From assembly GCA_965649765.1 (NCBI GenBank), contig OZ287750.1, positions 55,180,001 through 55,244,000 of the forward strand: a DNA stretch of 64,000 nt, written 5' to 3'. Source of the stretch: Bispira polyomma (taxonomy: Eukaryota). Made by a program: the position numbers and the translations under genes. Position 1 is the first letter of the stretch. Each line of letters begins with the position of its first letter. Below are positions 29,991-63,185 of the stretch, in pieces. Under the pieces are notes generated by a model. It saw only the letters and a list, made by a program, of their open reading frames with translations, was not told the origin of the DNA and ran no database searches.

Positions 29991-29998
29991 TCACTTAC

Positions 29999-30170
29999 TA
30001 TTACTATTATCAGGGTAGAGCACTATGACCAGTATGAAGGCTGTACACCAGAAGACAAACACCAGACTGAGGACGAGGTTGGGTATTAAGGTGAAGAGCC
30101 AGGGCAGTCGCCACCCAACATCCTCTCTGCCAACAGCCCGCACGATATCGGTGTACTCCTGATGGGTCAG
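29999..30170 (-). CDS. TIR-TMEM268-like gene, exon encoding TM helix 1
   Basis: gtgttttag acceptor, A|gtaagt donor, phase 0-1. Encodes LTHQEYTDIVRAVGREDVGWRLPWLFTLIPNLVLSLVFVFWCTAFILVIVLYPDNSN. Confidence 0.85.
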
Positions 30171-32408: not shown

Positions 32409-32527
32409 CCCGATGTCATACATCGAAAGAGTCTCGGGAACCTCTTCATGGTCAAATACCAGCCTTGTATTGAAATGACCTTGAACTGAAGTTGAGAGCT
32501 TAACGAGAACTTCACCATTTTGAAAAC
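32409..32527 (-). CDS. TIR-TMEM268-like gene, exon starting the TMEM268-like module
   Basis: ctatctttag acceptor, GGG|gtatgt donor, phase 1-0. GFQNGEVLVKL resembles TMEM268 'NGQVLTVL' (recalled). Confidence 0.83.
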
Positions 32528-37116: not shown

Positions 37117-37176
37117 CTGATGTGGGCGTGGTCAAAGATTTCAGAGTGTGCAGGGACTCGCTGATTGACAGGCCAT
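37117..37176 (-). CDS. TIR-TMEM268-like gene, Ser/Thr-rich linker exon (DGLSISESLHTLKSLTTPTS)
   Basis: ttttctcaccacag acceptor, CAG|gtaagg donor, 60 nt, phase 1-1. Confidence 0.78.
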
Positions 37177-38150: not shown

Positions 38151-38756
38151 CTAACTCCAGGTGCTGTAGTAAATTTTCCCAGAATTCTTCATCCATCCCA
38201 GCAGGCACATTCGTTACAGGACTCAAGCAACGCAAACTCTCGGGAAGATCACACGTCCGTAGTATCACAGGAACCAGTCGCTGCCGTCGCTGACTTAGCG
38301 AGGTCACGTGGGATATTGTATCCTCGTATTCACTCCAAGAATCCTGGAGAAACTCGGGACTTAGCACCAATATGACCCGCAAGCTGAGCATAACTGAGCA
38401 AAGGATATTCTGTATGGATGTTTGTTTGTCGTTAAAATCTCGGTCACCATAGCAACAGCGGTAGTTATATGGTGGAGCTTCAAGCACCTGCACCACATGC
38501 TCCACCCATGATCTGTCGTCATGGTGATATCCAAAGTACATGTGGTATCGATGTTTTGTATCCAGCGGACCGGCGCTATAACTGGACAGCGTGGAGATAG
38601 TTGTGCATTCCGATGGGCTGCGCAGATTGGTCAGGGCTAAGCCCCGCCCATAGAAGGCGGAGCCTGGGCATGTGTCACAACCTTGAAGGCGTAGATTTAT
38701 GTCATCTGAGTGGGTGATACTGCCAAGCACCTCATGATTGACAAGGACGCTTGTGT
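38151..38756 (-). CDS. TIR-TMEM268-like gene, TIR-domain exon (first constant exon)
   Basis: ttatttttag acceptor, G|gtatgc donor, 606 nt, phase 1-1. TIR motifs YHMYFGYHHDDRSWV, CYGDRDF, VILVLSPEFLQDSWSEYE, LVPVIL...LP..L, FW..L. Confidence 0.92.
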
Positions 38757-41700
38757 CTAAAAATAAACAAAACAGCATTTTTATATGGGAAAGTAATTTT
38801 GTCATATATAGATATGTACAATGTAAGTAATATATTAAGTTGATTAACATAATGACAAAGTTTGTATTAACATCAGTTCTAAATTGTATGTTTAGCAACA
38901 TAAGTAACAGTAATGTAATAATATAGCATGATATACCATAAATCAATGTTTTAAAAGCTCTTATAATGGCATTTTTATTATGTTAAATTACACCTGATTT
39001 TGAAGGGCAACTGGTCAATTGTATTGTATTGGAGTGTATATGTTTGATGTGCTTTTTTGATGCAAATCATCATTGAAAGCACTACTTACTGGATCAATCA
39101 TGTGTCCTACATAGCCTGGGTTGTCATCAGTAGGCAATGGGTGTATTAACATATTTTCTGAAAGGTTATCCCACCAATGAACCTAGCAGCATTAGCCGGT
39201 GTGAAACAGGCAACCTTTCTGATCACCAGACCAACTACATCAACCGGGAGTCCAACTTTCTCACCACAACTATGCAACAGTAGACTCAATCTTATACTTA
39301 GATCTGCTCCCAAATGTAATGAATTATTATGACCCATGCCACTGCCAAATTTCACGGCAATCGCCTTAGTAGTTTCTATAATTTTACAAATGTAATGTCT
39401 TGTGATCCTGGTGATAATAGAAACATATAAAGACAATGACACGCCATAATAACAATATTGTCATCTTAAAGGGTTGTCGCCCATGGAGCCGAGGCGTTTA
39501 CTGCAAAGATATACCAAAAGGAATAGAAGCACCATCAAGGAGACAGTTGGGAGAACATTTTGCAATTACACAACATTTAATCCGCCTTGGTGGGGGAATT
39601 TAACAGGAGACAGCATCTGTTTAGAGTAATATACACATACACATTTTACAAAAATACAGCATTTAGGAAATATGCAATCTCCAATTTAGCAGTATAATTT
39701 CTACCATCTCATCGTCTTGTTGCCAAGGTAACTCTTTCGAATACATCACTTTGTTGCACACCTGTCACCACTTAGTACAAACACACACACACGCCTGCTC
39801 TAAATGATTCCACTTTATCCTAAATGACTCTTCACACAATAACTATCACTTGCAGCAGGCAAAGCTAGCCTTTCTAAGTCGGTTTCGTTATTTCCTAATA
39901 AAGATTACACTTACATAATTAATAAATATACCACAAAGTATTACATATTTAATTCAACAATCTAAATATAACACACTGGAGTACAAGACCCAGATCTTTC
40001 TATTTCCAACTTTTGTAAGTTTATTCACTTGTGTAATTGTAGACATTGACATTATTAATGATTCCAAAATCCCTCCACAAAACCATTGTGGATTGATCAT
40101 TTTGATACAGTGCTCCTAAGTTATGGAAAAGTTTACAACTGACACCAGGATGATTGAAGAACTTCTAAGTTTTAAATGTGCAATTAAAACAGTTTTGTTC
40201 AATGAAGCTTACAAATGGGTAATCTAATCTATTGTAATGTTTTAATGTCGCTTTCAGTTACTGGGTCTTATATCATGCTGTAGAGTTTACTGTTGGAGAA
40301 AAAACAACAGTTCAGGGTAATTGGTCAAGATTTCTGAACTGTAAACCATCAGATTCCAACCAACCACCTGCCAAGCCAGAATGAGTTTTTAATCTAAATA
40401 TTCTGTTGTAGAGACTTCATTCGAATACTCTGTTGTTAAGAGTGCATTTTAATACCCCACTTAAATGTTCTGTAATGACCCTATTCATAGTATTAAATAT
40501 CCCTTTGAGACAGTAGAACCTAATAAATTAGTACAACCTCTATTATCCGAAAGAAACATTTTCATTTTTCACTTTATCCGAACATGTTGGGAGAGCAAGT
40601 GTTTGTCTGGACATCTGAAGGTTTGTGACGTAGGCATTTAAATACAACGGAAACATGTTAGCAGTGGATTTTTAAAATTAGAGCAGGTTTTACATCACTT
40701 TTAACAGCTTAGATCATATCGCAAAGGTCAGATTTATCAGTGGAGGAAACCGGTGTTTTTCAACACTGTAAACCACAGGCCCATAACAATTTGCCCAGCA
40801 AAGTTGCCCACATGAAAGAAAGGACGGGATTCAAACCAACATTGGTCCCTATGGAAGCAGTAGAGAGCAAAAGTGTTGATATTCAGATAATAGTGTTATT
40901 CTAAGTTGCTATCGTGTTATTTGCTCTGTCTATACAAACCACATTTGATAACCGGTGTATTTTGTACAGATTTTAGTCTTTAACCTAAAAACAACATCTG
41001 CCAGTGGGGCCCAGATGCCAACAAATTTACCTCAGAATGCGGAGTTCGATCCCAACTCTAGATTTTCTAGTACAGGTAGGACGACCATTTAAAATGTTGG
41101 TCCTATGTGGCTTTGGACATAATGACAGACTAAAGAGCCTAAAGAGACGTTGATAAAAGATCATGGTCAAACTAATCTTTGATATAATCTAATGTGTTCG
41201 TGTAATAATTGTTATAGGCCCTTGTTGGTTGTGTTTGTACAGTCATAAAAAGGGTAAATTATAGATCTACATCCAAGAAAAAACAAACAAAGATGTACCT
41301 TGTTGAGTATAAATATTATTCTTTCAAAACTATAATCTATTTGGTGTTTCATTTTATTTCTGCTGTAAAGGTTAAGAGACTATCACTTATATTCACAGAT
41401 ACAGCATTTTGGGAAAACATTGTACCTTAATAGAAAAAGTCGTCTGCTTGAAAGAGAATATTGGTAATTATGACGGCAAAATGGGTTTTTCTGTTTTCTT
41501 CCACAGGAAGAGGATTTGTGTGGAGGCTATTGATTAACGGATGTGCATTGTATTCTGATTGGTCAATTCTGCCCCTAAAGCCCCCCTTCACTTCAAAGGA
41601 CTTTCTGATGTAATTACAATGTGAAAAATTGGTCCCTGGAAGGAAAAGAATGGATTAATAAAGTTATAAGATGACACAAAAGTCAAAGAGAGAAAGAGAA

Positions 41701-42202
41701 GCACCTCTGAAAGGCTACAAAAGAAAATCAAAGAGAAAGCCTAGAAAAGAGTAACAGTCTATGAAAGGCCAGTTTTGTCAACTCTCAACAGACTGCTTTT
41801 TAAAACGGGTTAATATTAAATTCAACTCCATGTTTTATTTCTATTAATTGGTTGTCTTGTTTTTCCCTGTCTTTTGGTTTGTTTTGTTGGTCAACAGTAT
41901 TACACAAAAGCTACTGAACTTAGTTTACATGGACACATTTGTGGCACGATGCATATTGAAGCTCAATGAAGAATCTATTAAATTGTCAATTGAAAACAAG
42001 GATAGAAAGGCAAGAAATCTACTTTTCACCCTTTTTACACTGTGGCTCCTTGGTGGAGGTGTGTGCTCTACTGTGAACTCTATTCTGTGTAATCATCTGC
42101 AACATTTAAATGTTACTTACATGGTATTCACAGAACACTAAAAGTATTTACTTATCTTATCTGTTTTACAAATAACTTAGGTATTGCTTATTATTAGAAT
42201 TA

Positions 42203-42366
42203 TACAGTAAAAGCTGCTCGAGAAGTCACCTCTACAGACAGACCACCTCTGTATAAAGACCACACTTTCATATTCCAAGACTAATGTTAAACAATAAGAC
42301 CACCTGTCAATAAACACCACTTGTGAGGTTACCTTGTGCAGTCTTTATATACAAGTTTCACTGTAT
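42203..42366. mobile_element. Tc1/pogo-type MITE
   Basis: TA|CAGTAAAAGCTG ... CAAGTTTCACTG|TA termini with internal AGACCAC repeats. Confidence 0.65.
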
Positions 42367-44394
42367 CTGGTAAATGAGAATACCATTTTTACTAAGATAT
42401 ATACTTGCAAACAAAAGAATTATATGCAATTACTGCATGCAATAATTTTAGTAAATATTTTTTCCAGTTTTCTGGCAACCTAATTATACTGAGTCTGTCA
42501 TACAACAAGTCTAAAGAGGCTTTGATGAGGCCGTAGTAACAAATTTGCGACTCCCTTTCTGCAGGTGTGGGTTTTAATCTCAGTCCAAGTATGTTTCTGA
42601 GAAATTTGACAGTGGACTTGTTGAAGTTCGGTGGTATACAGAGGAGGCCACCTTGACCAACTATCTGTCGCATGACACAGGATACGTTGAAATTGAGGTT
42701 AAATCCAAAGTACATCTGTCACTCGGGTGAATAATCTTTATATAGGTTGTGTCACTCATAAAGTAACCCTACATACATAGAGAAAAGTTTGATCCAGAGA
42801 TCATCAGATATACTATTTAAAATATTTCTATCTTTTACCACATCGGAAACACTCATCATCAGCAAATAGCAAAATATTTCATGTTAATAGTTTTAATAGC
42901 ATGTTATGTAAACCGGGCGACAAACCAACACACACAAACAACATATCGAATACAGGATGAGAAGTGGTGGTAAAGTGATTATTTGTTTTAAAACCTATAG
43001 CAGTATATACAGTTCTACATGGGCGAAATGTTCAACAAAATGCCTAAATGGAAACAGTTCAAAGATGTTTACACTATGGGGAGAATTTCACAAACCATTG
43101 ATCATATCTATATGAAAAGGTTATCCTACACGAATGAAAATATCAGTCATAATTTATTACTGAATTTTTTTTCTCAGAGAAATTATTTGTAATTGTGATT
43201 CCAAGAAACTACACCAGTCGATCGATCAAAAGGACATTGTTTATCCATAAAACTGTGCACTAAATAATTCAACTACAGAAGATTTTTTCAGCTAAAGTGA
43301 CAGTCTCAGTCTCATATTGAACCTACTCCCTGGCTTTTACAGGCCTGAAAAATTGTAACTGTATCCCTAGGTTCAAAGATTTAAAGGCTAATACATGGTT
43401 TCACCCAGTATCATCTCTACTAGCAATTAACTATTGCAGTTTAAGAAAGGCATGTAATAAATGACACAAGTATTATTGATCTCCCTTGTCAAAGGACCCC
43501 TTTAACTTAATGACAATCTGATTACAGACTCCAATCTGGACATAGAATACATATTAAAATCATTAAACTTATCACAGAAACTAGTTGACAACAAAACCAG
43601 TATTCATGTTATGACTTTGGTCCCCAATGACTTAGATGCTACATAGTCTGCGAGGGCTTATATTTAGGGCAGTTTTTCATGGTAAAATAACATCCTGCTG
43701 CAAATAGGTAAATGGGTAAATACTTTTCTAAAATATAGAGTACTAATTGTTAACAAAAGGGATCAATTTGTTCATGTGGACATCTTAGTGCAATATCCTT
43801 AGTTTTTGTGGTCAATTCAGTGCTGTGACATTCTTCATTTGGGTACAAACGTAGAGTCTGTTTTCTCACAATTCAGTTTTCTACAAGAAGCTGAAGCCCA
43901 AGCTCAAAGTCAATTTGAATACATACCAATCGTTTGAGTCCTTGCGTAAGATTCCAATCCACAATTGTGTGAACAACCACTTATAAGCTCAGGTTATATT
44001 TAACTTCTAGTTCTGAGATAGGTTGACCTATCTTTACCAAGAGTTTATATTTATCCACAAGACCACAATTCAACAATTCTTATTATTATCCTTTGTCTGT
44101 GCACCTACGCAATTTGCTATATCTATTTTTAGTTCAATTACCTATGCAATAAAAGGATACTCCTACAAAATTGATAATTAACCTCCTTCGTATTTAAACG
44201 AAACATTTACTCCACTGTAGATCTTAAATAACGGTTTGCTGGACAACTCCTTAGTGTCAACCACTAAAAAATATATCAATCACTCATCCTACTTTTTAGA
44301 TAATAGTTTGGTTTTAGATAAATATAAATTTTGTAAACACTAATACCTAGGTCTTATTTACATGAATGACTGCTACAAATTTTCACTGATTTGT

Positions 44395-44647
44395 ATTTTT
44401 TTTCAATTGGGATATTTAACGTCCACTCTAGTACCTGTTTAGGTTATATTGGGACGGGTGGTTGGAAACGCTGGAGGTGACACTGCATACAGTTGATCAA
44501 GGTTCTGCACTGAAACCAGCGGCCTACAGTAAGGAACTACCACCTTTCCCATAGGCATTGACAGGATTCTAACTCACGCTGTCCAGAGGTGAGAGACCAG
44601 TGATTGTGAAGCGCAATGCTTGCTAACCACTAGGCCACCGCGGCCCC
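44395..44647 (-). mobile_element. tRNA-derived SINE family 1
   Basis: TSD ACTGATTTGT. Confidence 0.9.
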
Positions 44648-44856
44648 AACTGATTTGTCGTAAACATACACCATGTGATGTCAGGGGGAAATCTACAGAC
44701 ATATAATATGGCAGGTTTTCCTTCATTTTTTTCCTGTAACATTTCTTTATCATATATAACTATCAAACTGGGAGACTCCAAAGTTCCTGATCATATGGTT
44801 GCTCACAATATTTTCTCATCTTTAAACTTGGTTTTATGACTTATTGTTTACCTTAC

Positions 44857-44926
44857 CTTGTCTGGTGAATCCACTGTATCCATATTGCTTAGTACCCTTC
44901 CTCCAGGAACTAATTACAGATCCCAT
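44857..44926 (-). CDS. Alternative start exon A (MGSVISSWRKGTKQYGYSGFTRQ) of the TIR-TMEM268-like gene
   Basis: aaaATGG start, CAAG|gtaagg donor, 70 nt = phase 1, matching the TIR exon acceptor. Full CDS would be 1650 nt = 549 aa + stop. Confidence 0.75.
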
Positions 44927-46205
44927 TTTAGCCGGGGTTTTTTTTATATTTAAGAGCTGGTGTAATCACAATTTGAGATTATCCAGAACATGCTTTTGAA
45001 GTTGTTATGATTTTGACTATCTGTATCAAATGTAATATGCCAATTAGACTTTCGATAAATATATCTAGCACTTTAAATAAAATTTCAGTGGACAGTTCTT
45101 ATCCACTTTATCATCAACACAGTAATGATGTGTCCTCCAGCTAGGTAAAAGCTCCCAGACCCTCAGCTCACACAATATCCCCATCACTCTTTCCTGTCCC
45201 CAACTACTAATGGTCTAAGCACATAAAAAATATCTACACAGAAAACACATACACCAAACAACATCTTGCTGCAGGCAATTGTAAGATCTTTGCAACAAAA
45301 ACAATGATGATTTTTTGCCACTTCAATCGGTTTCGCTGTGAGTAAGAACCCCTACTATGACTCCAGCTAGAAGCAGTCCTGGCTTTGGGTGAGCATTTAA
45401 TGACAGTCACAACAGTAATCTTTAATGAAGACAAACTATTACTACCAGTGGAACAGTACACATCAGGGAAACCGATGACATTTCTTTATAACTCTACACA
45501 TAAATCACGTTTGGAAATTCACAAAGTTTTTTTTTCTGTTTATGAACATTTTGCTGTTTTACTTTGTAATGCTTTCTTCACAATTAATCTTTTGGAGTTT
45601 TGTTTTTTTTGTGAAGAATCTTCGTGAGCAGAACAATAAGATTTTATAACTGTTTTTTATTACTCCTATGAATTGTTTCATATTTGTTGATGTTTAGTAA
45701 TCTGTTGTCATATATTCCAAAAAACAACAACAGTGTAGTTTTATTTTAATCTACATTTCTTTGTATGTCATTTGATATATATATATATAAATCAATCCTT
45801 ATTATCACAAAAACCTTTTAGCACTACCCCCCACTATTATACTGATCAACTCTTAAGCCTTTTATATTCCATATGATCTATGCCAGCCTTTTATATCATC
45901 TCCCGTGGCCTAGGTGTGTGTGATAAGTGGTGACAGGTGTGAACCAAAGTGATGAATTCGAAAGAGTTACCTTGGAAACCAGACCGTTTATTGTAGCAAT
46001 TCAACTGCTAAATTGGTGATTGCAGCTTTCCCTATGCTGTATATTTTGTGAAATGTATATGTGCATATCAATCTAAACATATCTTGTCACCTGTTCGTCA
46101 CCAGAATTACAAGACAGTATATTTATAAAATTATAGAAACTTTTGGCAGTGGCATAAAAATTCATTAAATTTGGTAGGAGATCCAATTCAAAAATTGGAG
46201 ATTAC

Positions 46206-46400
46206 TGTGGCCTAGTGTTAATTAGAAGGTTGGATTCCCGGTTGGGGAGTTGGTCTGGTGACCGGAAGGCCCTCATTTTGACTCCTGCTAACATTGCAAG
46301 GTTCTTTGGTGGGATAACATCCTTGGGCAAGATATGAACACATTATTGCCTTCTGATGAGGACCCGGGCTGTGTTATAAGGCACATGATTGATTTGGGTT
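46206..46400 (+). mobile_element. Older SINE family 2 (other copies ~37680-37770 -, ~39100-39285 -, ~52420-52590 -, ~57655-57860 +, ~60575-60730 -)
   Basis: GTGGCCTAGTG head, GGAGTTGGTCTGGTGA and GGATAACATCCTTGGGCAAG blocks recur in diverged form. Confidence 0.7.
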
Positions 46401-46770
46401 TTGCTCTTTTGAAAGATACGAGAGCATCATTAAAGCACGATTAAAAGGTATAATATAATATAATATAGATGTGTCCCTGCCTTTCTATAGTTTACCACAG
46501 TAAACATCCTTTATGAGTAATATCCTTTATTTATAACAGGCCTGTGTATTTATAACATTATTTACAGCCCTGTTCACTACTACCTATTTTTCTAATTTTA
46601 TACATGTCTATTGTGTGTATTGAATCAATATATTGAACCGGTTTAACATAGCTCCGGTTTAATGCTTTCTGGTTTAATGTTTGTATATTTCTAACTTATT
46701 AGTATTGGTATAGTATTACAGGTATATATGTAACATTTCAATCTAAAGCATTGCTACCAATACCCTAACA

Positions 46771-46962
46771 GGGCCGCAGTGGCCTAGTGGTTAGCAAGCA
46801 TTGCGCTTCACAATCACTGGTGTCTCACGTCTGGGCAGCTTGAGTTTGAATTCAGTCGATGCCTATGTGGGAATCCAACTACCCATCCCAATATAACCTA
46901 AACAGGTACTAGAGTGGACGTTAAATAACCAAATTAAAATAAAAATTAAAAAAAACAAAAAA
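46771..46962 (+). mobile_element. tRNA-derived SINE family 1, internally deleted
   Basis: Head and tail are joined, with the central core missing. TSD ACCAATACCCTAAC. Confidence 0.88.
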
Positions 46963-48526
46963 ACCAATACCCTAACTGGGCTATAACTTAAAAAGGGCAT
47001 CATTAACTACATATGTATAAACTTTACTCTGATTAAACATCAGTTGTGTCTAGACTAGCTTGTTATGAAAGTTAGTCTGCTGCTGTGCGCTAAATTTTAT
47101 CATTGATGGTGTGTAATGTGTAAAAACCTAAAGGTTCTGTGTAAAAAAGTTATATACAAGGACTTCTCAATGATAATATCCTTGAAAACCCAGATATGTT
47201 TGTGTTTAAGGATGACCAATTGCACCCAGCACAGCTACCTTCATCTGGTATTTGGAACACTAATTTAGCTTTTCTTGATTGCAAATATATCAGTAACTGT
47301 GATTCGCAAAATTGAAGACAGAAGCTTGAGGTTGACCATTTGTCGACATGTATATAGCCTGCCAGTTGGGATTTGACCAAATGACAAAGAACTGCTATTT
47401 CAAGTATAATTCCCAGCCGCTGTGTATCTACATGTACTTGGTTGCCTCAAGCTGGGGGTGAACACATGCCCTATGTATTCAAATGCAAGTGTGTTGTCCA
47501 CTAGCTCCACACTCCTCGACCCCAAATACCCTTATCCAAAACCTCGGCCTTACATCATTACATTTTACTATCTTATTTAAATAAAATTGAGTTTATTAAT
47601 ATATGTTTTCCAAACAAACCTTATGTCTTTCAAATCTCACTCTCCAGCGACTGACTAAGTCATTAATGTTATAGAGAATCATGTGCCTTATGTATGCTGT
47701 TCCATTGGGCATTGTATTGTACCACTAGTTATTTAGCAATCTACGAACTAAGGAGACTTCAAGTAGAACTGTGTATCATGTGCTGTGTGACAAGTGATCA
47801 ACAATAACTGGTTGGACAAAAGGACAGGTCATTAATTAGACTGATCTGAGGCATATCAATGGGGGAAATAGCAAGACTTGGAATGGGAAACTGCTCAAGG
47901 TCATCTAATATTGATATTTTCAGTGTTGTAAATAACAGTTACATGTAGTGTAACTTACAAAGTCTAGTAATGACGTAAGAGTTAGTTACACCGTCACAAA
48001 AGGAAGCACAAATCCCCTAATTTGCTCATCTTAATGTACACAAATTGTGGGATTTCTACAATTTTGTGAATACACCATTTAACAAGTGGAAATAGAAACT
48101 GTAACCCTCTTTACTAAACTTACCCCCCAAAAAGATAGTAGTTGTTTAACTTGTTTGATGATATGAAATACAGATGTCAGTGATTCTGGATAAATAAACA
48201 GTTCACATGGTGTATGTCTCAGAAGATGTGTTTGTTTTTGATTATACACATTTGCCTATGTACAACCTCAAATAGGTTCCTGTCAACAATTAACAGTACA
48301 ACTTCACCAACAAGCAGTTTTGGTACCATAACAATTCCTAGAAGGAATCACCGGTTATACACCTTTCATTATTTGTCACCTACTGTCAAAAGTATTAGAC
48401 TTTAAGGTATAGCGGTTACTGGATGCTGGTTGGTTGTATGTTCACATTGAAAAATGAAAGCTTTGATCTCCAGGAAGCCCAAAGATACTGTTTGATAAAT
48501 AAACTGAAATTCATTCATTCAGGAAC

Positions 48527-48527
<1 letters not shown>

Positions 48528-48606
<79 letters not shown>
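48528..48606. repeat. (TA)n microsatellite
   Basis: Pure TA run of ~79 bp. Confidence 0.98.
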
Positions 48607-48608
<2 letters not shown>

Positions 48609-48759
48609 TGCTAATATCAGCTATTGACATGTTACACTGACATTTATAGTAGTTTCAAGTAAATAAAGCTAGAACCCCAACAATATATATTTAAGTACAT
48701 GCATGACAAGTAGAGAAAGAGGGTGAAGTGTATGCATTATGCCTAATTGGATCATTTAC

Positions 48760-48829
48760 CTTGGCTGGAACATCCATTATATTAATATTGCTTGTCACAC
48801 CTCTTCCGAGAACTAATTACAGATCCCAT
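48760..48829 (-). pseudogene. Alternative start exon B, disabled (MGSVISSRKRCDKQY*YNGCSSQ)
   Basis: Colinear 70-nt paralogue of exon A with CAAG|gtaaat donor. In-frame TAA at codon 16 (48782-48784). Confidence 0.7.
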
Positions 48830-51478
48830 GCTATCCGGATTTTACCATAAAGGGTTGTGGTTTACTAAATTTATGGTATTATGCATAATGTTATTTTTAG
48901 AATTTATTTGTCTGTCTGAACTGCAGTATGATTAAGAATTTTATAAACACATCATGCTCAGATACCAAATTCAGACACTTAGTTCACCCAATATCTTCAT
49001 CAATCCTTGCTGTGTTGCACCTACTGATGGTCTTGAAAGGCATCAACATATTTTTGCATTTTAAAATAATCTTGAGATGTATTATTGTCTTTAATTATCT
49101 GATATATGTTTGTTTGTACAGTTATAATTCACAAAGCAAAAAAAAAAAAAAAAAAATTATACCTGGTTATAGATATATCTACTTTTGAAATGTTTCTCGT
49201 AAGGAGCAGCTTGTGTTGACTTGTTCAGGCTCGTTTCGCGTTAGTTGCAATTAGTAAGCTGTTAGTGAACTTTTGTTGTATTTAGTGATGTATTAGTGGG
49301 TGTTCGGTATTGTTCATAATGTCTTCATTGCTCATTTGTGGGTTTTAGTGAAGGTATGTTTCATTTCTGCGGCACGGCTGGCTCAGTTTCATTTCAAACT
49401 CACTTCAGCTTTGTCTGGGGAGAATTTTTAAGAGATGAGGGGGGAAATATGGTAATGCTCGAACGCACGCAAGTTACAGAATAGATTGATAATGTCCACT
49501 CCCCTAAAGTGACATCAGTATATGAGTATGTATATGTGCAGCTTTTACCTGCCCTTTTGCTTTTATTATGCACGACTATCGTGCAAGAAATCAATAAATG
49601 GTTTCGGACACTTTCATAGAGTGCGCCCACATACAATAACTACCTGTAAATATACATATTATGGTATAGCTGTAAAATATAAACTGTAGATGTCGTCATT
49701 GCAAATACACCATTAGGACCGTACTTTAAATCCAGTATGGAAATAAAATCAATGATGAAATCAACAGTCCTTTAAGTTGCACCTAGTTGTTCCTAAATTA
49801 TTATCAGGCCACATTCCAATGACAGTAAAACATCGGATGACTTTAAATGGGGAAGTTCAAACTAATATATGACATTTGTATTTGAGTATGTATTTAAAAA
49901 TATTCAAACTTTACGTTGCACGTAAAACCTGAAGAGCTTTACAAGGCTTTTTGAAGTCCCATCGTATAGTAATAAAATAATTTGTTCTAAAATAATATAA
50001 AAATTACAAAAGGGCACCAGAAGAGGTAAATTTTTATATCTGTGAAAAAGTGTTCACATATTGAAAATATATCTGTAGCGTAAGCCAAAATATGGAGAAA
50101 GGGGGCAGTTAACAAAAAACTCACAAATCACTGATAGTCATAGCGATGTGCTGTTACAACAGCTTATGCTTGAAATTATCTGTGCTTAAATTATTGATTT
50201 ATTTTGTGACACATTTATCAAAAATAACTATTACATCAAAAGTGGTGATATTCACCAAGTTAAAGATTGGTGAAACTTCCAAGTATTAAGGTTTGTTTAA
50301 TATAAATATATATTTGTAAGATTGACTACAATTTAGTGTGACACATAGATGACTACAGTGTTTGTTATTCACATATTACCATCTGCTTTAAGAAGAGATG
50401 TACATTGTTACTTTACACTTTGTTATTTATAAAGCACCAAATTGATAAATGTTAATTCTTGGTGTAATAACTTGGTGTTAATTCTTCAAATGGCATAGTA
50501 CGTTACAAAGACAAAGTTATCAGCAAGAAAGTGCTGGAACACTATATACACATGTAAATAAATTAAAAGTAGGATGGACCATAAGGAACAGTGCAATTTA
50601 AAATGGTCACAGAGACTCAATATATAGCTGTAAATTTTCTTAATTGTCTCTCACCTATATGCACTTTCACAGATATTATCTGCCACATGTAGATATTTAT
50701 TGAACTTATACTACGTTCATCTGGAGTTCTGTCATTAGTGTCTTAATGAGAGGATAAAGCACAGCTTAGTTGTTAACTTTGTTATTCATTAAGCAATCTA
50801 CTCATTAATGAGGCTGTCAACGTTTCGTAATTGTATTTTGCATTTTTAAATTCACACTTATTATCTAGCTCTGTGTTAATATAATATTTTGCATTTTACC
50901 AATCTATAAGTCCAAAAACATAGCCAGGTCGTAAGGAAGAATGTGTGAGTGTGCAGGGGGGGGGGGGGGGGGGTAGTATAAAGAGATAGGGTTTCAGTTT
51001 TTCTCCTAGGTGGGTTTATAGAGGGAACAGAAAGTCTTTTTCCTCTCTCAAGGTTAATGAAGCAAAGACGAGTAGCAAGGTAGGAAGGCTGTTGTACTGC
51101 TGTTGGCTGAGCAGAGAAGACACCTTGTCATCTTGTGGCCAACAATGTCTGATCAGCAGTGCTTGGTTAGACAAGAGGGAAGGGTAATTAGTTAGACAGA
51201 TCTGAGGCATGTCACGGAGAAAAAAATCCTGTAATGAAGACATCAATTGATGTTTTATAGAACCTAAGCCTAATTTGTATGTAGAAAATGGTTCTAACCA
51301 CTGTATCTTACAAACTACATCTAAAAAACAGGAAAGTGGTACAGATAAAATAAACTAATTTTATTTATAGACTGTACTGAAGAAGGGTACATCTTCATAT
51401 AACCACTTCACACAGCTGATATATTTTATGTACGACAAATACATGAGCTGTTAATAATGAAGCCTTATTGTTGGTATT

Positions 51479-51733
51479 GGGACCGCAGTGGCCTAGTGGT
51501 TAGCAAGCATTGCGCTTCACAATCACTGGTCTCTCATCCTCTGAGTTTGAATCCCGTCGATGCCTATGTGGGAAAGGTGGTAGTTCCTTACTGTGGGTCG
51601 CTGGTTTCAGTGCAGAACCTTGACCGACTGTATGCAGTGTTTCCTCCAGCATTTCCAACTACCCGTCCCAATGTAACCTACTAAAGGGTATTAGAGTGGA
51701 CGTTAAATACCCAAATTCAAATCAAATTTCAAA
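51479..51733 (+). mobile_element. tRNA-derived SINE family 1 (present only in duplication copy 1)
   Basis: TSD-like TTATTGTTGGTATT / TTATCGTCGGTATT. Empty site at ~60027-60040. Confidence 0.9.
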
Positions 51734-52799
51734 TTATCGTCGGTATTAAATTGTACTAAAAATGGTATATGATTATAATGTGGTCTATAGTAATAGATAA
51801 AATTTTCACGAGTTGAACCCCTTGTTAGACCCCTAACCTTGTACTTGTGACCTCAACTATTTTTCTTGGTTTCCCACAAGGGTTCATTCTTGGTTAACAA
51901 CTATGAATAGTATATCTGTAATGAAATCATTGCTTTACAAAAATGTTTATTTATGTTGTTTGATATTATGTTACAGATTATTTGGCTAAATAGATAGATC
52001 ATGTGGTGTGCATTAGGAAATCTGTTTAAAGTTTATACAAATTACATGTACTTTGTATTAGGAAACTTCCTATTTAAGTATATGAAGAACATATAAAATA
52101 TGTTAGTGTGTTTTTTTTTTTTTTGTTAAATGAATAGCTCAAGTTGTGTATGTATCAGGAAATCTATTGAGATAAATTTCCCCAATAACCAGTCTAGATT
52201 GCATGGCAACTCTTTCAATGCGTCAGCTGTTGCAGACCTACCATCACTTATCACACACACCTGCAGCACAAAGTGCCAGGGCTGAATAGTTGTTATGGAT
52301 ACTGGTTGACTATTCTGTACGGTATTGTATATAATATTCCAACATGCTATATTGCTGCAAGCCTTCTTCTCAAGTGTAACAAACAAATCAATCAACCAAT
52401 TCATATGTCCTATATTATAGCATGGATCGTCATCAGTAGGCAATGGCATGTTCACATCGTGCCAAAGGATGTTATCCCACAAAAAAATGTTAGCAGGCCT
52501 TACGATCACCAGACCAACTCCCCCAACTAGGATTTGAAGCGGGGACCTTCTAATAACCGTATCAACTCCCTAACTATAGGAGACCACATGATATTACTAG
52601 TTTACTCTTTAAAATGGTAATTTTTGAATTTCCATGGCTATACCAAGAAAACACTACTCAGTGAATAAGTCAGTATAAATAGAAAGGGAATATGAATTCA
52701 GTAAATACCATCTATTGCCATGCAATTTTCACAATCAGTGTTGCTACAAATAGATGAAGGAGAGCCGTGGGATGTATTGTCCCTAATTGAGAGACTTAC

Positions 52800-52869
52800 C
52801 TTGCCTGGAGAATCCACTATATCCATATTGCTTGTCACACCTCCTCCTGGAACTAATTCCAGTTCCCAT
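52800..52869 (-). CDS. Alternative start exon C (MGTGISSRRRCDKQYGYSGFSRQ)
   Basis: agcATGG start with an upstream in-frame stop, consensus CAAG|gtaagt donor, 70 nt, phase 1. 59/70 nt identical to exon A. Confidence 0.72.
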
Positions 52870-55800
52870 GCTATCCAGTATTTACTCTGGTTTGCCTAAC
52901 TGTTTGTATTATGGACAATGTTTAGATTAATTTAGTTAATTTGTCTGGGTCTGCATAAATTTGAGTATGAATAAACCTTTTTGTAAAGACACTTTGCATG
53001 ATTTGTTTTAAAAAAAAAAGATTAATAAACTGGAGACATTTTTCTAATAATTGCAGTTTGTAAACCACACCAGAATTGATCGTCTTACTTTTTCCTTAAC
53101 CAATGTAAAACTCTGAGACCCTTAGATCACACAATATCTCTATCAATGATTATTGTCTCCAATTACTAACAGTCTGGGATTGCAAAATATGAGAAAACCC
53201 CAGATTAAAACAACCTGACTTAAGCACTTTTAAGATCTTTGTATTTTTTATTCTACTTCAATCTGTTCTCCTGGGAGTAACAACCTCTGTTCTAACTGTG
53301 CCTAACAATCCTGGGGGTAACTGGGGCTTAGTGGTAAAGTCACAGAAGTAATGTTTAATGAAGACATATTTTTATTATCAGTGGAACCTTGTGACAGAGG
53401 AAAGGCCAGCATTTCTTTCAAACCGACAAGCAGAATCCACTGTAGTAAATCACATTCTGTTTTTATACCCAATTGTTTTATTGTTACCAGTCATTTCTGT
53501 CTCTGTTCTATAATCTGAAATATGTCTCTTTGTCCACTTTCTCAGTAGAGACATTGATGAAAATGTTTCTTTGTTCCTAATATTTGTACAGATGTTTTGT
53601 TTTTGCAGCAGTCACTTGTCATGGGCCACAAACAATACTAGTGTAGTCTAGTGAATAAATCTCTGCAACACATATTCACAGCTGTGTATGTATACATAAA
53701 AATATCTTTCCTATATGGCCATGTGACTCTGTGATGTCAGAAGTGTTTCTCAGACCTTATCATTATGCCATTACATAAAATGCTCCAATTTGTCTTTATA
53801 TTTTTGTTTATACCATAACCCATTATCTGTTATATATATCTATCCAGTTTCCTTATTTTAGTGTTTTGAAAACAGTAAGCTTCCCCGCTTGTCCACAGAT
53901 ATATGTATATTTTTATATTTACCGTGTCCATTACCAGGCCTAAGTAACATCCTCTACCTAATGTTTTTGTCTGCCACCATGTAGAGTTGTTCTCTGTATC
54001 ATCAGTTATAACAGTATTTACAACCTTCACCTGCCCACCCCCGCCTCCTCATCCCCCTCCTTTTATTATGCATGTCTATCGTGTAGCATGGAATCAATAA
54101 ATTGATGCAGCCTCCTGTCTCTTGTACAGCTCTGTGTGAAAAATGGTTTTTGATGTTGTTTTTTTTTGTTTAATTAAATTCCAGACAAATAAACAAAGGC
54201 AGTAACACCTGTAAATATGTAGGCTATATACCAAGTAACCAGTAGACTCACAGAAACAAAATTTTCACTATCCATATTTTAATTGTGGTTGTAAACCCAA
54301 CAAGGGCTAAAGTAGACATAAACTTTAAAGACTTAACTTTATTTAAGTTTGAGTTGTATCTAATTGATACTAAATAATTTCACTATTGCAGATTCCCTTG
54401 TATTCTCTAAATCTGGTGCCACACACAAAAAATAGCATTTGTGTATTTGTCATAGTTATAACATGTAGCATTTCTTATTGTTAGGTGAATTGGGAACATT
54501 TACAGTAACTATCTCTCATTTGACCAGCTCACAGCTTTCATTGTTCCTGACCAAAACTATATAAGAACAAGGTAAAAATCAGTCTGTTTATATCGATTCA
54601 GGGGCAGTATTCATAAAAGGTCTTAGTCTCAAATCTTTACTTTGTCTTAAGTGTAACATTTTGCCTAAAATATTGAAGACGGTCTACTGTTAGTTGGAAT
54701 TTATAACAGAAAAGTTAACACAAACCAAAGCTCTTCTAAAAGCAAGGGTTTCAAGTGAAGTTTTTTCCACAGTCTGAATCGGATTTTAGGAGAGCATTGA
54801 CTGCTAACATTAAACGTTTGTGGAAAAATGTATATACATACATGCATAATATAGAACTCACTCTCGTCTTTATTTGTACGCCTTAACAAAAACGTCCTAT
54901 CAAGGAGAAGAAAATGCCCGACAGTCAAGCTACAATACCAGCTGTGTCCCCACCGATACATCTTTACTGCGGCATGAGCTTTAATTTAATCCCATGACGT
55001 AAATTTGCTGTTTTCTGTGTATAAACCAAAAAAACTGACAAAAAAAAAATGTCTGGTATTTGTATTGAAATTGATTTAAATTTAGTAAAAAGTATAGGCA
55101 GAGTATGTAATATACATTTAAATGCAATGTGCAGTTAAAGTGCCTGCATAAGCACAGCTGTCGTGATGGCTTGTAATAAAAATGATATCATTTGTATATC
55201 ATGTCATATTGTAATATGACAGGTGGCACGATAATAAACTATCTTTCTCTCTATCCCTCGGAGAATCAAACATTAAGGAAAATACTAAATGTTGTATGTT
55301 CTTTACCGCTGTCTTTTTGTTGTTGCATTGTTTGTTGCTACCAGGGTTACACAAAAACTGCTCAACTGATTTACGTAAAATTTGGTAGAGGGAGATGAGC
55401 CATTAGCCTAGGCAGAATCCATCACATTTTCAAACCAATATGATTGGATACATGAATATTTTTTTTATTTGTTTGGCATTGCAGCATTTCGGCAGAGGTA
55501 TGCATTCTACTATGTGATCTAGGTCCGTCTAGTCCAGATCTTAAGCAAGATAATAGCACTACAAGGTGTTGTTAAGCCATTAGCTGGATTGTATTGTGTG
55601 TCATTTACATATTTAACATTAAGGAAGGACGACATATGTGTTATTAACTGTAGTAAATCTCTCTAAGTAGAAAATAGGGCTGTACTGAAATGGGTAGTTG
55701 TTATAAGAAAGGATTAGATGTTCAGATTAGCTAATGAGCAATCAATGGTAAGAAATGGCAGTATATGACAGATTATAGCCAGAAGCAATAACAATATAGG

Positions 55801-58800
55801 CAACCTAACCTAAATATATATTGTATGTCTGTGCATACATATATATATATATGTCCATATACATATGTATGTATGTTTTAACTATAACAAATAAAATGTA
55901 TAGTGAATATGGACCTGGTGGTAAGGACTGCCTGCTTTGTAATGACATGTATTTATGTAAATATTGATACAGCAGGTGACATCTAAATAGATTTATGTAT
56001 CTATGTAAAGACAAGTATTGGTGAGAAATACAGCTGAACTAATATGACCTGTGTTTTACTTGCGATTTAACATTTAAATACGATTCAAACCCTGCAGATC
56101 ACAATTGCATCGGGGTAGATATGTTAATTATACCACACATAGAATTGTTCAAGGCAGGTATTAGCCATTAGGCTCAGAATATTTTACTTGATTTTGAAAC
56201 TAGTTTTAAATATGTCTACATTTATTCTTACATAAGTAACTTTCCTGGCTAAGAGTACATTATACCTCAATGAAATATATACATATTTTAAATTAGTTCC
56301 AAGTCAATCCTATGGCCTTATTCTCGAAAGATCTCGAATTTAACTCAGACACAAGGTCAAATTTGAAGTCCCCACACATTTGGCTACAGTAAGATTAATG
56401 AACGTTTGACTGCATATTTGAATTCAGCACTGAAATGGTCACATGTATAAGTTTATTCCATATACACAGATTTCCTCACCACCTTCATGTGGGTTGAGTT
56501 TGAGTTTGTTTGGAGAATAGGGACCTAGGTTTTCTGTTAAATGTGAGCCTTAAACCAAAACCACGTAAGGCTATTAGAAGTCAAGTTTGCAGCAACGATT
56601 TCTCCATATCCCAGGACGTATTATTTCCTGAACAGAAGTGCAGACTTTCTCCCTTTGGCTATTGATATAATAATAAGAAGATAATTTTTTCAGAGCATAT
56701 ATTATGTTACTGAGGTATAATATCTGGCATACTAGAATACTCAAAAAGATTGTGTCACCATAGAGGGAAAACTAGAAACACGGAAAGCTAGCATATTTGT
56801 GTTGATCTCAATGTATTGAGAAACTTTTAACAAATGGCAATACATATTCATCGTGCCAAATGTAAATAATTTAAGACCATCAAAATATTGTGTACAGTAT
56901 TCTGAAATGGCTGAATATTTGTGTAATAATGAAAATATGTCCTCGACATGTTACTATTCATGTTAATACTGCCAGCCAAGCCATTATCAACAGTGCAGGA
57001 TATTATTACCACAGGCTACATATTTTATACTTTCCTGACATGGCATCACATTCAACTTGATGTCAATTTCTTCTGCTTCATCTATTTCTTACAAACAGCT
57101 TGACAATGTTTAGTGTTGCTATTTATTACTATCTAAAGAAATATTAAACATTTAGGGGTGGTGAAAATACATGGGTAGCATTGTGGTAATACCTATAGTA
57201 CCCAGGGAGACAGCACACCTTTCAGTGACTAAGTCAAATCTGGAGTCAGACTTTGGCTATCTTTCTTGTACACACAAAGATACATGATGATATTATTTTG
57301 ATATTATTGTGATGATGTTTTGACATTGGGGCAGTTCCATTGAGTTAATGGAGTCAGTAGACTAGTCTACCCATCAAGGAGATACAGCTGCCCTCCATCC
57401 TGAGTAAATGTGAGACCACTGCTTTGAATGTGATAGGCAGTACTTAGTTTGGCAAAAATGGACAGTGATCTGGGGTATGACAATTAGATGGGTTTGGGGG
57501 AAATAAATGTGGTGAGGCCTTGTGCAAGGTCATTTACAAGTTGATACTTGTACACAGCGATTACTTTTTTTAATCATTTGTACATAACATAAACTTGTTT
57601 ATCTGGAGCTTTAAGAGGGTAAGCTTTAGATAAAGTAGAAGCACTTGTGGTACCCCGTGGCCTAGTGCTTATGGAGTTGGTCTGATGATAAGAAAGTCCT
57701 GGGTTCTATTCCCTGTACGGCCACTAGTTTCATTAGTCGGATAACATCTTTGGCAAGGATGTGTACACACGTTTGCCTAGTGGCTCAGATGACCAATTAA
57801 AATGGTGGTCCTCTGTCACGTGGTCTTATCCCCAGTAGCAGGTTAAAGATCTTTGGGGACGTTGATACATGGTCATCACAGTTTCATTTCGAACTTGTCC
57901 CAAGCTACGTCTGGAGAGAGAAGTTTTGAGATATGAGGGAGGGGCGATGGGGTGATGCTTTCGTCACGTAACACTAGATCCTAGTGTGCAAGACGAATAT
58001 CCGAATGAGACCAGGCATTTACAGAATAAATTTTCATTGTCCTACCCCCCTAAAGTAACATCATTTGACATAACCTTGCACTGTGTGGACTGTGTGTATA
58101 TGTGCAGCCTTTATCTGCCCTTTTGTTATGCAAGATTACCTTTAAATATAAATGGTATGGTATACCTGTAACATATAAACTGTAGATATCAGCACTGAAA
58201 ATACGTCATTTGGACTGTCCTTTAAATCCAGTATGGAAATAAACTCAATGATTTAATCAACATTTCCTCAAGTTTCATCTAGCTGTTCCTAAATTATTTC
58301 CCGGCCCCTATGGTGTTCAAAATCCCATACCCTTAAGGAGTCACATATCATGACAGTAATACAGCATATGCCTTTAATGTGGGTTATTGTTGGGGGACAG
58401 TTCCAACTAATATATGACATATGTATTTGTTGGTACATGTATCTGTGTAGTATGTTCACACTTTACTTTGTACCTTAAAACTCAAGAACATCATAATGCC
58501 ATTTAAAGTCCCATCGTATGGTTGAATATATATTTCTCTGAAATAATATAAAAATTATAAAAGAGGACAAGAAGAAGATAATTTAGTAGGACATCTGTAA
58601 AAAGGTGCAGTTTTATAATTGTTAATATATTTAAAAAATATATGTGGCCCAAGCTAAAGTAAAATGGATGACAGTTAACAAACTCACAACTCACTGGTAG
58701 TCATAGTGATGTACTGTTACAACAGCTTATGCTTGAAATTATCTGTGCTTAAATTATTTGTTTTCAAAAATAACTATTACTTTGAAAATTCATGAAAATG

Positions 58801-58823
58801 GATATATTCACAAAGTTGAAGAT

Positions 58824-59073
58824 TTTGAATTTGAATTGGGATATTTAACGTCCACTCTAGTATCTGTTTGGGTTATATTGGGACGGGTAGTTGGAAACAC
58901 AGAAGGAAACATACAGTTGATTAAGATTCTGCCCTGAAACCAGCGGCCCACAGTAAGGAACTACTACCTTTCCTACATAGGTATCAACAGGAGTCAAACT
59001 CACGCCGCCCAGAGGTAAGAGACAAGTGATTGTGAAGCGCAATGCTTGCTAACCACTAGGCCACCGCGGCTCC
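58824..59073 (-). mobile_element. tRNA-derived SINE family 1 (present only in duplication copy 2)
   Basis: TSD AAAGTTGAAGAT. Empty site at ~50257-50268. Confidence 0.9.
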
Positions 59074-60942
59074 ACATAAAGTTGAAGATACTAACATTTC
59101 TTTAATTTTTTATTTTTTTAGGATCAACAATAATTTAGTGTTACAAATAGATGAGTACAATGTGTATCATTCACATATATTACCATCTGCTTTAAAAAGA
59201 TATGAAGGCTGTCACTTTACACTTCAGAGTTTTCAAAAAGCAAAATTGATGAAACACACTCTGAGTTGTAGATTAAACTTATATTATGTTCATCTGGGGT
59301 TCTGTCATTAGTGTCATAATGAGAGGATGAGGCACCGCTTAGTGGTTAATTTTGTTATTTATTAGGCAATCTACTCATCGCTGAATTGTATTTCGCACTT
59401 TTACACACCTTATTGATGTGAGCCAGTTTCAAAAGTGCAGCAACAGAATCAATTACCCAATCGAGACGTCCAAAAACATAGCCAGGTCGTAAGGAAGAAT
59501 GTGTGAGTTTAAAGGGGGGTACGCAAGTATAAAGAAATAGGGTTTTAGTTTTCTCCTAGGTAGGTTTTACAGAGGAAGTCTTTTTCCTCTCTCAAGGTTA
59601 ATGAAGGAAAGACAAGTAGCAAGGTAGGAAGGCTGATGTAATGCTGTTGGCTGAATAGAGAAGACACCTTGTCATCCGGTTGTATGTGGCCAACAGTTTT
59701 TGATCAGCAGTGCTTGGTTAGACAAGAGGAAAGAGTGATTAGAAGGCAGATCTGAGTCAGATCTGAGGCATGTCAAGTAGAAAAAATCCTGTAATGAAGA
59801 CATCAATTAATGTTTTAAAGAACCTTAAGATTATTTTGTATGTAGGAAATAGTTCTAACCAATCTGTCTCTTACAAACTACATCTAAAAAACACGAAAGT
59901 GGTATACATAAAATAACCTAATTTTATTTATTGGACTGGTTGTACTAAAAAGGGATACACTTTTATATCATCACTTGACACAGTTAAGATATTTTATATA
60001 CACCACTGTTGAGTAATAATGAAGCCTTATCTTTGGTATTAAATTATACTGAGAGTGATATATGATTATAATATATGTAAAAATATATTAACCCGTTGTT
60101 AAACCCCTAACCTCGTATTTGTAGCCTTAAGCTATTTTTCTTGGTTTTCCCACAAGTGTGTAGAAATCACTGCTTTACGAAAATATATAGTTATGTTGTT
60201 TGATGTTATATTACAGATTCCTTAGGTAAAGAGATAGATCATGTGGTGTATATATTAAGAAATCTGTTTGAGGTTTATGCACATTATATGTATTTTGTTT
60301 TAGGAAATTACCTATTGAAGTAACATACTTTTATATATAAAATATGTTAGTGTTTTGGGGGGGTTAAACAAATAGCTTACATGGTGTATGTATCAGGAAA
60401 CCTATTTCCGATAAATTTCCCTAATAACCAGTCTTGTTTCCATGGCAACTTTTTGAAGGCATCAGCTGTTGACTATTCTATACTGTATTCTATATTATAT
60501 TTCAACATGCTATATTGATGCGAGACTTATTTTAAAGCGTAACAAACAAACCAATCACATATCCTAAATTATAGCCTGGCTCATCATCAGTAGGCAATGC
60601 ATGTTCACATTGTGCCAAAGGATGTTATCCCACTAAGAAACGTTAGCAGGGCCTTACGATCACCAGACCAACTACCCAAGGTGGGGACCTTTTGATCTCC
60701 GGATCGACTCCCTAACTACCAGGCCATGGGAGACCACATGCTATACTAGTTTAGCTTTAAAATGACAACTTGTGAATTACAAAGACCAGGGAAATACTAC
60801 TCAGTAAATAAGTTAGTCAAAATAGAAAGGGAATATGAATTCAGTAAATGCCATCTAGTGCTATGTAATTTATACAGTTATTGGATGTACAAATAGATGA
60901 AGGAGTGTGGTGGGATGTATTGTCCCTAATTGAGAGACTTAC

Positions 60943-61012
60943 CTTGCCTGGAAAATCCACTATATTCATATTGCTTGTTACACCTCCTCCTGGAACTAAT
61001 TCCAGTTCCCAT
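60943..61012 (-). CDS. Alternative start exon D (MGTGISSRRRCNKQYEYSGFSRQ)
   Basis: 67/70 nt identical to exon C, CAAG|gtaagt donor, phase 1. Confidence 0.72.
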
Positions 61013-62911
61013 GCTATCCAGTATTTACTCTGCTTCGCCAAACTCTTTGTATTATGGACAATGTTTATATTAATTCAGTTAATTTGCCTGGGTCTGCATA
61101 AATTTGAGTATGAATAAACCTTTTTATAAACACATCTTGCATGATTTGTTCAGAAAACCAGATCTATCAACTGGAGACATTTTTCTAATAATTCCAGATT
61201 GTAAACCACAAGACAATTGATCTTTTACATTTATCTTAACCAATGTAACACTTTGAGACCCTTAGATCACACAATATCTCTATCAATCCTTATTGTCTCC
61301 AATTACTAACAGTCTGGGATTGCAAAATATGAGAAAAAACCCAAATGAAAACAACCTGACTTAAGCCCATTTAAGATCTTTGTATTTTTTTATTCTACTG
61401 CAAGCTGTTCTCCTGTGAGTAACAAACTCTGTTCTAACTGTGCCTAACAATCTTGGGTGTGACTGGGGCTTAGTGGTAAAGTCACAGAAGTAATTTTTAA
61501 TGAAGACACATTTTTATTATCAGTGGAACCTTGTGACAGAGGAAAGACCAGCATTTCTTCAACACCGACAAGCAGAATCCACTGTAGTGAATCACATTCT
61601 GTTTTTATACCCAATTGTTTTATTGTTACCAGTCATTTCTGTCTCTGTTCTATAATCTGAAATATGTCTCCTATTTCTCAGGATGTTTTCTTTTTTTCTA
61701 TTTTTTGTATAGATGTTTTCTTGCTGCAGTCACTTGTAATGGGCGAAAAACAATATTAGTGTAGTCCAGTGTATAAATCTCCACAACACATATTCACAGC
61801 TGTGTATATTATATACATATAAACATATATCCTATATGGCCATGTAACTCTGTGATGTCGAAAACCTTTTCAGACCTTATCACTATGTTATTATGCAAAA
61901 AAGTCCAATTATCTTGCACATCTTCTATTAATACCATAACTCATTATTTGTTATATATATCCAGTTTCCTTATTTTAGTGTTTTAAAAACACTAAGCTTC
62001 CCCTCTTGTTTACAGAAGATATATATTTAATGTGTCCATTACCAGGCCTAAGTAACATCCTCTACCTAATGTTTTTGTCTCCCACCATGTAGAGTTGTTC
62101 TCTGTATCATCAGTTATAACAGTATTTACAACCTTCACCTGCCCACACCCACCTCCTCATCCCCCTCCTTTTATTATGCATGTCTATTGTGTAGCATGGA
62201 ATCAATAAATTGATGCAGCCTCCTGTCTCTACTACAGCTCTGTGTAAAAAATGGTTTTTGATGTTGTTGTTTTTTTGTTTAATTAAATTCCGGACAAATA
62301 AACAAAGGTAGTAACACCTGTAAATATGGAGGCTATATACCAAGTAATTAGTAGACTCATTGAAACATAATTTTCACTACCCATATTTTAATTGGCATTG
62401 TGGTTGTAAACCCCAACAAGGGCTAAAGTAGACATAAACTTTAAAGACTAAACTTTATTTTAGTTTCAGTTGTGTCTAATTGACACTGAATAACTTCACT
62501 ATTGCAGATTCCCTTGTATTCTCTAAATCTGGTGCCACACACAAAAAATAGCATCTGTGTATTTGTCATAGTTATAATATGTAGCATTTCTTATTGTTAA
62601 GTGAATTGGGGACATTTACAGTAACTATCTCTCATTTGACCAGCTCACAGCTTTCGTTGTACCTGACAAATCTAGCTAAGAACACAGATCCTTTCCCTGG
62701 CGTGTACGAAATATGACATGCTACAGATATTATAAAAATAACCTCTGGCTATGTGTGTCCAAAAATCTCAGGCTTAGCTCAAACTTAGGGGCAAAGTTAA
62801 GGTCCACACATATTTCTTACTAAAATGTAAAAATTAGATAGCTATATGAAATTCAGCACTAAAAATCTCACTGAAAAGACAGGTTACAAATAAAGATAAT
62901 TTAGCCTGAGG

Positions 62912-63185
62912 TTCCTTTTAGCATGTTTTTCTTGGCCGATGTCTGATGTTGGTCGACATTGGCGGATTTTATCAGTCACTATTTGATATTAGGAACACCT
63001 TCCTGATTTTATCAGTCAGGGAGCGAAAAAATCAGGAGGTCTGTCCTATTTTTTAACAAATATTGAGAAAAAAAAATTATCTTATTTTATTTTTTTTTTA
63101 CGAAGAACATATTAGATGAAAGGAAGCTAATCGGCTAATGTCGCATCGGCTTGGATGTTAATAAATCGGCCGATGCTGAAAGGAA
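62912..63185. mobile_element. MITE (present only in duplication copy 2; related end at ~5938-5965)
   Basis: TIRs TTCCTTTTAGCAT ... ATGCTGAAAGGAA. Confidence 0.65.

Follow-up and report, generated by a model that had tools for sequence, protein, structure and literature searches.

The TIR-TMEM268-like gene and its four first-exon cassettes

We analysed a window of 64,000 nt of Bispira polyomma DNA (OZ287750.1), and positions below are window coordinates unless stated otherwise. On the minus strand of the window lies a gene whose constant region encodes a TIR domain followed by a TMEM268-like membrane module, and above this region stand four short paralogous cassettes, A to D, each a copy of a first coding exon (Table 1). 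All four cassettes are 70 nt long, begin ATG G and finish CAAG/GTAA in phase 1, as was checked in the window letters, and each holds 23 codons and 1 nt. The ATG is the start of the frame in every cassette, because in-frame stops sit 5 codons upstream of it in B, C and D, and 14 codons upstream in A. The acceptor at 38756 reads TTTTAG/AC, and the last G of a cassette joined to this AC makes an Asp codon. Cassettes A, C and D have strong donors, carry a purine at -3 and share an MGxxxS start, and Gly2 and Ser6 are found in all four copies. The likeness among the cassettes is beyond chance (blastn E values 1e-15 to 1e-66). An earlier note on this DNA had described four colinear 70-nt minus-strand exons with a stop in B, a phase-1 CAAG/GTA end and an Asp at the 38756 junction, and all of its coordinates and translations matched ours. 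It had also reported no paralogous TIR exon between the cassettes; we saw none there either, and the constant exons are present once in the genome and are not repeated with the cassettes.

The same note supposed that the array might run past 64000, which did not hold. A genome-wide DNA search found exactly 4 cassette copies in B. polyomma, and profile and translated scans found no further cassette in the 182 kb above D; the array therefore stops at D. Beyond 64000 the duplicated unit of D continues to about 66600, but with non-coding sequence alone. Two other candidate exons were rejected: an open reading frame (ORF) of 127 codons below C (52126-52509) had no Pfam match and overlaps repeat-derived DNA, and a candidate at about 37980 is interrupted by an in-frame stop and is unmatched in the close relative described below.

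Seven exons follow the 606-nt TIR exon, down to 22355, with canonical AG/GT ends and in one frame, and the gene model has nine exons and 549 codons with any cassette. The 606-nt exon matched Pfam TIR_2 (E 1.8e-10) and is without a close paralogue in the genome, where the next best match is 34% identical. The constant exons were searched one by one against proteins, and the six below the 60-nt exon each matched, in order, the 540-residue LOC135487228 protein of Lineus longissimus. In an AlphaFold model, the Lineus protein (predicted local distance difference test, pLDDT, 79 on average) has disordered residues 1-70, a TIR fold occupies residues 85-212 and a long helical hairpin comes next; its best structural matches were the TIR domains of TLR1/TLR10/TLR6 and Hydra TRR-2. 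Two hydrophobic stretches in the window exons agree with this hairpin. The gene thus has the family's order of parts, namely TIR, two transmembrane helices and an RH..CLCQ C-terminal module. Related proteins occur in nemerteans, bivalves, gastropods, octopus, a hemichordate and amphioxus, and family members match Pfam DUF4481 (the TMEM268 family) weakly, with scores near or under the curated cut-off. Duplication of the whole gene was ruled out, since the constant exons are single copy.

A Toll-like receptor (TLR) has extracellular leucine-rich repeats (LRR), one transmembrane helix and its TIR domain at the C terminus; the predicted protein, with an N-terminal TIR domain, two transmembrane helices after it and no LRR, is of another architecture. 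The TIR domain here and in the orthologues is without the BB-loop Pro-Gly, and ordinary MyD88 recruitment is therefore not to be taken for granted. A role in immunity may be proposed from the TIR domain and, by analogy, from the part of mouse TMEM268 in phagocyte integrin turnover (PMC11169502). The TIR-TMEM268 family is widespread in invertebrates, and a literature search gave no description of it and no paper mentioning a TIR domain together with TMEM268, while DUF4481 was named in one paper.

Table 1. Features of the locus, with the Lineus first exons for comparison
Feature	Position	Strand	Remarks
Cassette D	60943..61012	-	intact first-coding-exon copy; D12N, G16E and one silent change relative to C; 22.2 kb intron to TIR exon
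Cassette C	52800..52869	-	nearest copy to the relative's single exon; purifying selection; donor AAG/GTAAGT; 14.0 kb intron
Cassette B	48760..48829	-	dead: codon 16 is a TAA stop, with several replacement changes besides; ATG and donor retained
Cassette A	44857..44926	-	most proximal; open frame; Gly2 and Ser6 retained, Cys11 lost; 6.1 kb intron
Unit carrying C	49641..57626		about 8 kb, about 4.7 kb of it upstream sequence; own later SINE-like (short interspersed nuclear element) insertion at about 51478-51733
Unit carrying D	58137..64000, on to about 66625		77-87% identical to C unit; own SINE-like insertion at about 58824-59074
Conserved non-coding element	41435..41703	-	single copy; shared first intron; 67% identical to close relative (segment 4577-4897); CCAAT core
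First constant exon, common acceptor	38151..38756	-	606 nt, phase 1 to phase 1; linker and TIR domain
Constant exon	37117..37176	-	60 nt; 87% identical to close relative
Constant exon	32409..32527	-	119 nt; TMEM268-like part begins
Constant exon	29999..30170	-	172 nt; transmembrane helix 1
Constant exon	26132..26232	-	101 nt; transmembrane helix 2
Constant exon	24644..24787	-	144 nt
Constant exon	23634..23735	-	102 nt
Last coding exon	22355..22630	-	RH..CLCQ motif; weak Pfam DUF4481 match, E 0.0012, under curated cut-off; single copy in genome
Lineus first exons (OU342995.1)	10001, 27551, 35507, 50919 of extracted segment		four unrelated short phase-1 exons

First exons in other species

As a close relative we used a contig of ENA ERZ22147071, whose TIR exon is 74% identical and which was walked upstream in five steps; copy numbers in the relatives refer to one contig each. 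This contig carries one orthologous 70-nt exon 32 kb above the acceptor, with a phase-1 CAAG/GTAA donor and 19 of its 23 residues as in C. No second cassette was found in the 54.5 kb examined, of which 22.6 kb lie above the exon. In the more distant ERZ25069296 (about 52% protein identity), one 52-nt phase-1 exon with an MGSVLG start was found 8.8 kb above the acceptor and is single in the 17 kb examined. Among comparable candidate exons in control DNA, 1 of 181 starts MG[S/T]. Since two other species carry one MG-type exon above the same acceptor, the cassette can be taken as a real first coding exon, and the array appears to be specific to the B. polyomma lineage. The count of cassettes in this and related genomes, which the earlier note had proposed, thus came to 4 here and 1 in each of the two relatives.

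For N-myristoylation, the consensus is Gly2 after the start Met and a small residue, usually Ser or Thr, at position 6. All four copies and the close relative fit this consensus; position 6 is Ser in the close relative and Gly in ERZ25069296, and Gly2 is present in both. The 23-residue basic head thus opens with a likely N-myristoylation signal, and the conservation of the Gly2 start across three species supports, without proving, this modification.

In L. longissimus, LOC135487228 has four RefSeq isoforms (XP_064626798 to XP_064626801), which differ only in the 6-13 residues before a common junction. By the RefSeq annotation, from which the first exons were taken, each of these heads comes from a phase-1 exon of its own; the four exons are unrelated and lie between 2.6 and 43.5 kb above the CAG/AC acceptor. 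One head has an acidic dileucine-like motif and is annotated as the start of the Tubulanus polymorphus protein as well (LOC141899026, XP_074641279). Several more distant family members likewise begin with acidic dileucine-like motifs, and such starts suggest sorting signals. A dileucine first exon of the Lineus type was looked for in the 104 kb upstream of the acceptor in B. polyomma, and none was found. The Lineus and Tubulanus genes resemble that of Bispira in protein architecture, in exon layout and in having short first exons that join the same acceptor in phase 1. However, the Lineus first exons are mutually unrelated and none of the four heads starts MG, whereas the Bispira cassettes are paralogous copies of one MG exon. 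Because the Lineus isoforms join unrelated short first exons to the same acceptor, head swapping appears to be a trait of the TIR-TMEM268 family. The earlier proposal that the cassettes fit the TIR exon in frame as its first exons is borne out by the orthologous exon above the same acceptor in two species and by the four short first exons that Lineus joins there.

Origin, constraint and possible use of the cassettes

The units of C and D are collinear and arose by tandem segmental duplication, which took the upstream DNA along with the exons. An assembly artefact was ruled out, as the units are merely 77-87% identical and carry private insertions. The flanks of A and B can be aligned over short stretches only, so these two are older than C and D, and A is probably the oldest copy. 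The proportion of synonymous differences (pS) was 0.07-0.29 among the copies and 0.49-0.73 against the close relative, which places the duplications after the split from that relative, unless conversion has homogenised the copies.

Cassette C and the close relative differ by 9 synonymous and 5 replacement changes, with a ratio of replacement to synonymous proportions (pN/pS) of 0.15 (P = 0.0005 against neutrality). The lineage of C is thus under purifying selection, and C is the best candidate for the main start. D gave a similar result against the relative, because it shares most of C's history. When the four copies were compared pairwise, with 3-16 differences per pair, pN/pS was 0.52-1.05 and no departure from neutrality was detected (P 0.23-0.65). 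Although the counts are small, this pattern would be expected with one constrained copy and the others drifting. The array was found in neither of the two relatives, and purifying selection was detected on the C/D lineage only, the comparison among paralogues having low power.

From these results we propose the following course, to which we give about an even chance. A single ancestral first coding exon, with an MGxxxS start and a 23-residue basic head, would have been copied three times in the B. polyomma lineage by local tandem segmental duplications that included upstream DNA. Transcription would begin above one cassette, and the phase-1 donor of the chosen cassette would splice across the downstream cassettes to the single acceptor at 38756; according to the annotation, the Lineus orthologue joins the same acceptor over introns up to 43 kb. 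The downstream cassettes show no acceptors of their own. The product would be a two-pass membrane protein of 549 residues, with the TIR domain and a two-helix TMEM268-like part, in which the cytosolic TIR is preceded by a floppy disordered tail with a basic, probably myristoylated tip. C would be the conserved working start, and B would yield a truncated peptide only. A and D, which are intact and evolve as if largely freed from constraint, would serve as spare or secondary starts, perhaps with a gain in the variety of promoters, rather than as parts of a selected set of different anchors.

Several observations weigh against this course. With so few differences per pair, neutrality of A and D is not rejected rather than demonstrated. 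A keeps its ATG, Gly2, Ser6, open frame and strong donor, although its flanks are 31-48% mismatched to those of C, and this retention hints at some constraint. In addition, each of the three differences of D from C is common to another copy, two to B and one to A; homoplasy or short gene conversion between cassettes may be responsible, and the assignment of changes to branches is blurred.

Selected diversification of isoforms, with A, C and D each transcribed from its own promoter and their heads differing in targeting, is possible but in our judgement rather unlikely. The heads of C and D would then combine the myristoyl site and a basic patch with Cys11, a possible second lipid site, while A lacks the Cys and D has an altered GYxxF context. 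Three intact copies have strong donors and a purine at -3, and C and D each carry kilobases of their own upstream DNA. The private changes of A are almost all replacements and fall on positions at which C and the relative agree, including Cys11, and D alters the Gly of the GY motif, which A, C and both other species retain. The four different short Lineus heads on the same acceptor, one of them acidic dileucine-like and shared with Tubulanus, point the same way. However, both relatives have a single copy, B is dead, the copies show no excess of silent or replacement changes, and Gly2 and Ser6 are identical in all of them, which would leave the class of lipid unchanged. The suggestion in the earlier note that the cassettes provide isoform diversity is thus sustained in part: the in-frame first-exon copies and the TIR and DUF4481/TMEM268 constant region are real, but a maintained menu is unsupported so far, as the relatives are single-copy, B is dead and the changes fit neutrality. 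Its further point, that the isoforms have different N-terminal anchors, is likewise unsupported so far: A, C and D all have the MGxxxS start, with which the anchor class stays the same.

It would also be possible that only one cassette, most likely C or else the proximal A, is transcribed and spliced and that the rest are silent relics of duplication, but we consider this improbable. B is such a relic, and other tandem duplications exist in the region. The divergence between the C and D exons (3/70) lies within the range expected from 5-15% flank divergence if D drifted. On the other hand, A and D retain all signals, and the upstream DNA was duplicated too, so the promoter should have been copied along with the exon.

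The single-copy conserved element in the shared first intron is a candidate for a shared enhancer or for a further promoter or start; it was rejected as a coding first exon, having no conserved ATG or donor. A leader exon bears on another arrangement, in which the cassettes would be mutually exclusive second exons under a shared non-coding leader exon further upstream. The approximately 87 kb above D hold long ORFs of mobile elements only, leaving room for such an exon, and the DNA just above the ATG is unconserved in comparison with the relative. But an alignment of the five copies shows no conserved polypyrimidine-AG acceptor above the ATG, and in the relative no conserved block in single copy came to light at greater distance upstream. 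We regard this arrangement as very improbable, and duplication around a conserved working C is still the reading that we prefer.

Several other features were observed in and around the window. An LRR-Roc-COR (Roco) gene lies at 3150-10469 on the plus strand, with a reverse transcriptase ORF of the long interspersed nuclear element (LINE) type at 6240-8063 that separates the LRR part from the Roc part; upstream, at distances of about 130 and 150 kb, lie copies of this LINE element that are nearly identical (97-98%). Just above the 101-nt transmembrane exon, the acceptor region recurs in short, degenerate tandem copies (26232-26380, minus strand), and introns of the constant region contain minisatellite-like tandem repeats at 28400-30000, 35750-36060 and 33830-34530. 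A tRNA-like SINE family has many copies throughout the window. About 9 Mb off, at C3:46204846-46311222, three same-strand tandem TIR exons that are 29-34% identical to the TIR described here form a separate small cluster. At C3:55312211-55348775 there is an 18.3-kb head-to-tail duplication whose copies are 99.8-99.9% identical; it is either a very recent event or an artefact of assembly, and the 221-codon ORF in each copy had no match in Pfam.

Comparison with known systems

The earlier note had likened the layout, with many first exons and one constant region, to the protocadherin and UGT1 loci. The comparison is apt, as paralogous 5' coding cassettes on the same strand and in the same phase stand above a single constant region. 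The variable-first-exon clusters of protocadherin, UGT1 and GCNT2 include relic exons (PMC1885805), and the 5' cassettes of chelicerate sDscam have expanded by lineage-specific segmental duplication (PMC4835542). With clustered protocadherins, UGT1, GCNT2 and sDscam the Bispira locus shares tandem paralogous 5' coding cassettes, one constant region, relics among live copies and growth within one lineage by segmental duplication at the 5' end. Unlike in these clusters, the cassette is a head of 23 residues, disordered in the Lineus model, and not a folded specificity or substrate-binding domain; the array has four copies and is absent from two relatives, and separate promoters or the use of several cassettes would be putative here. 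We regard the fourfold copying of this conserved start exon in a TIR-TMEM268 gene as real, lineage-specific and of a known architectural kind, and the reading of the extra copies as a selected isoform menu as so far unsupported. If most copies are drifting, the locus would give a clean snapshot of the birth of a cluster, with one conserved start exon, three duplications and one dead copy. If several cassettes are used, it would be a minimal variable-first-exon cluster, whose variable part is a membrane-targeting tag only.

Human and mouse TMEM268 belong to Pfam DUF4481 (PMC6748091, PMC11169502), and in the mouse TMEM268 binds CD11b, whose degradation in endolysosomes it limits (PMC11169502). 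The Bispira protein resembles them in its C-terminal module with two transmembrane helices and RH..CLCQ, but differs in having an N-terminal TIR domain. As cited in PMC6321704, ecTIR-DC proteins (evolutionarily conserved TIR-domain proteins of invertebrates) are, like the Bispira family, non-TLR TIR proteins that are widespread in invertebrates.

In TRAM/TICAM2, which is myristoylated, and MAL/TIRAP, which binds PIP2, a short N-terminal motif decides the membrane at which the TIR domain is placed (PMC11745336). A similar reading of the present family, which we offer tentatively and think unlikely, is that the tiny first exon would act as an exchangeable label that addresses the TIR domain, that Lineus and Bispira would have built menus of labels independently, and that the choice of promoter would set the membrane from which the TIR signals. 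The Lineus menu would then consist of four unrelated exons with dileucine-like and tyrosine-type heads, and that of Bispira of a duplicated and diverging myristoylation exon. The likeness to TRAM and MAL is an analogy only, since these are soluble adaptors encoded by separate genes, whereas the Bispira protein is predicted to be integral to the membrane and its TIR lacks the BB-loop Pro-Gly. Use of several cassettes would allow a direct test of whether promoter choice moves a TIR domain, a job that vertebrates assign to the separate adaptors MAL and TRAM.

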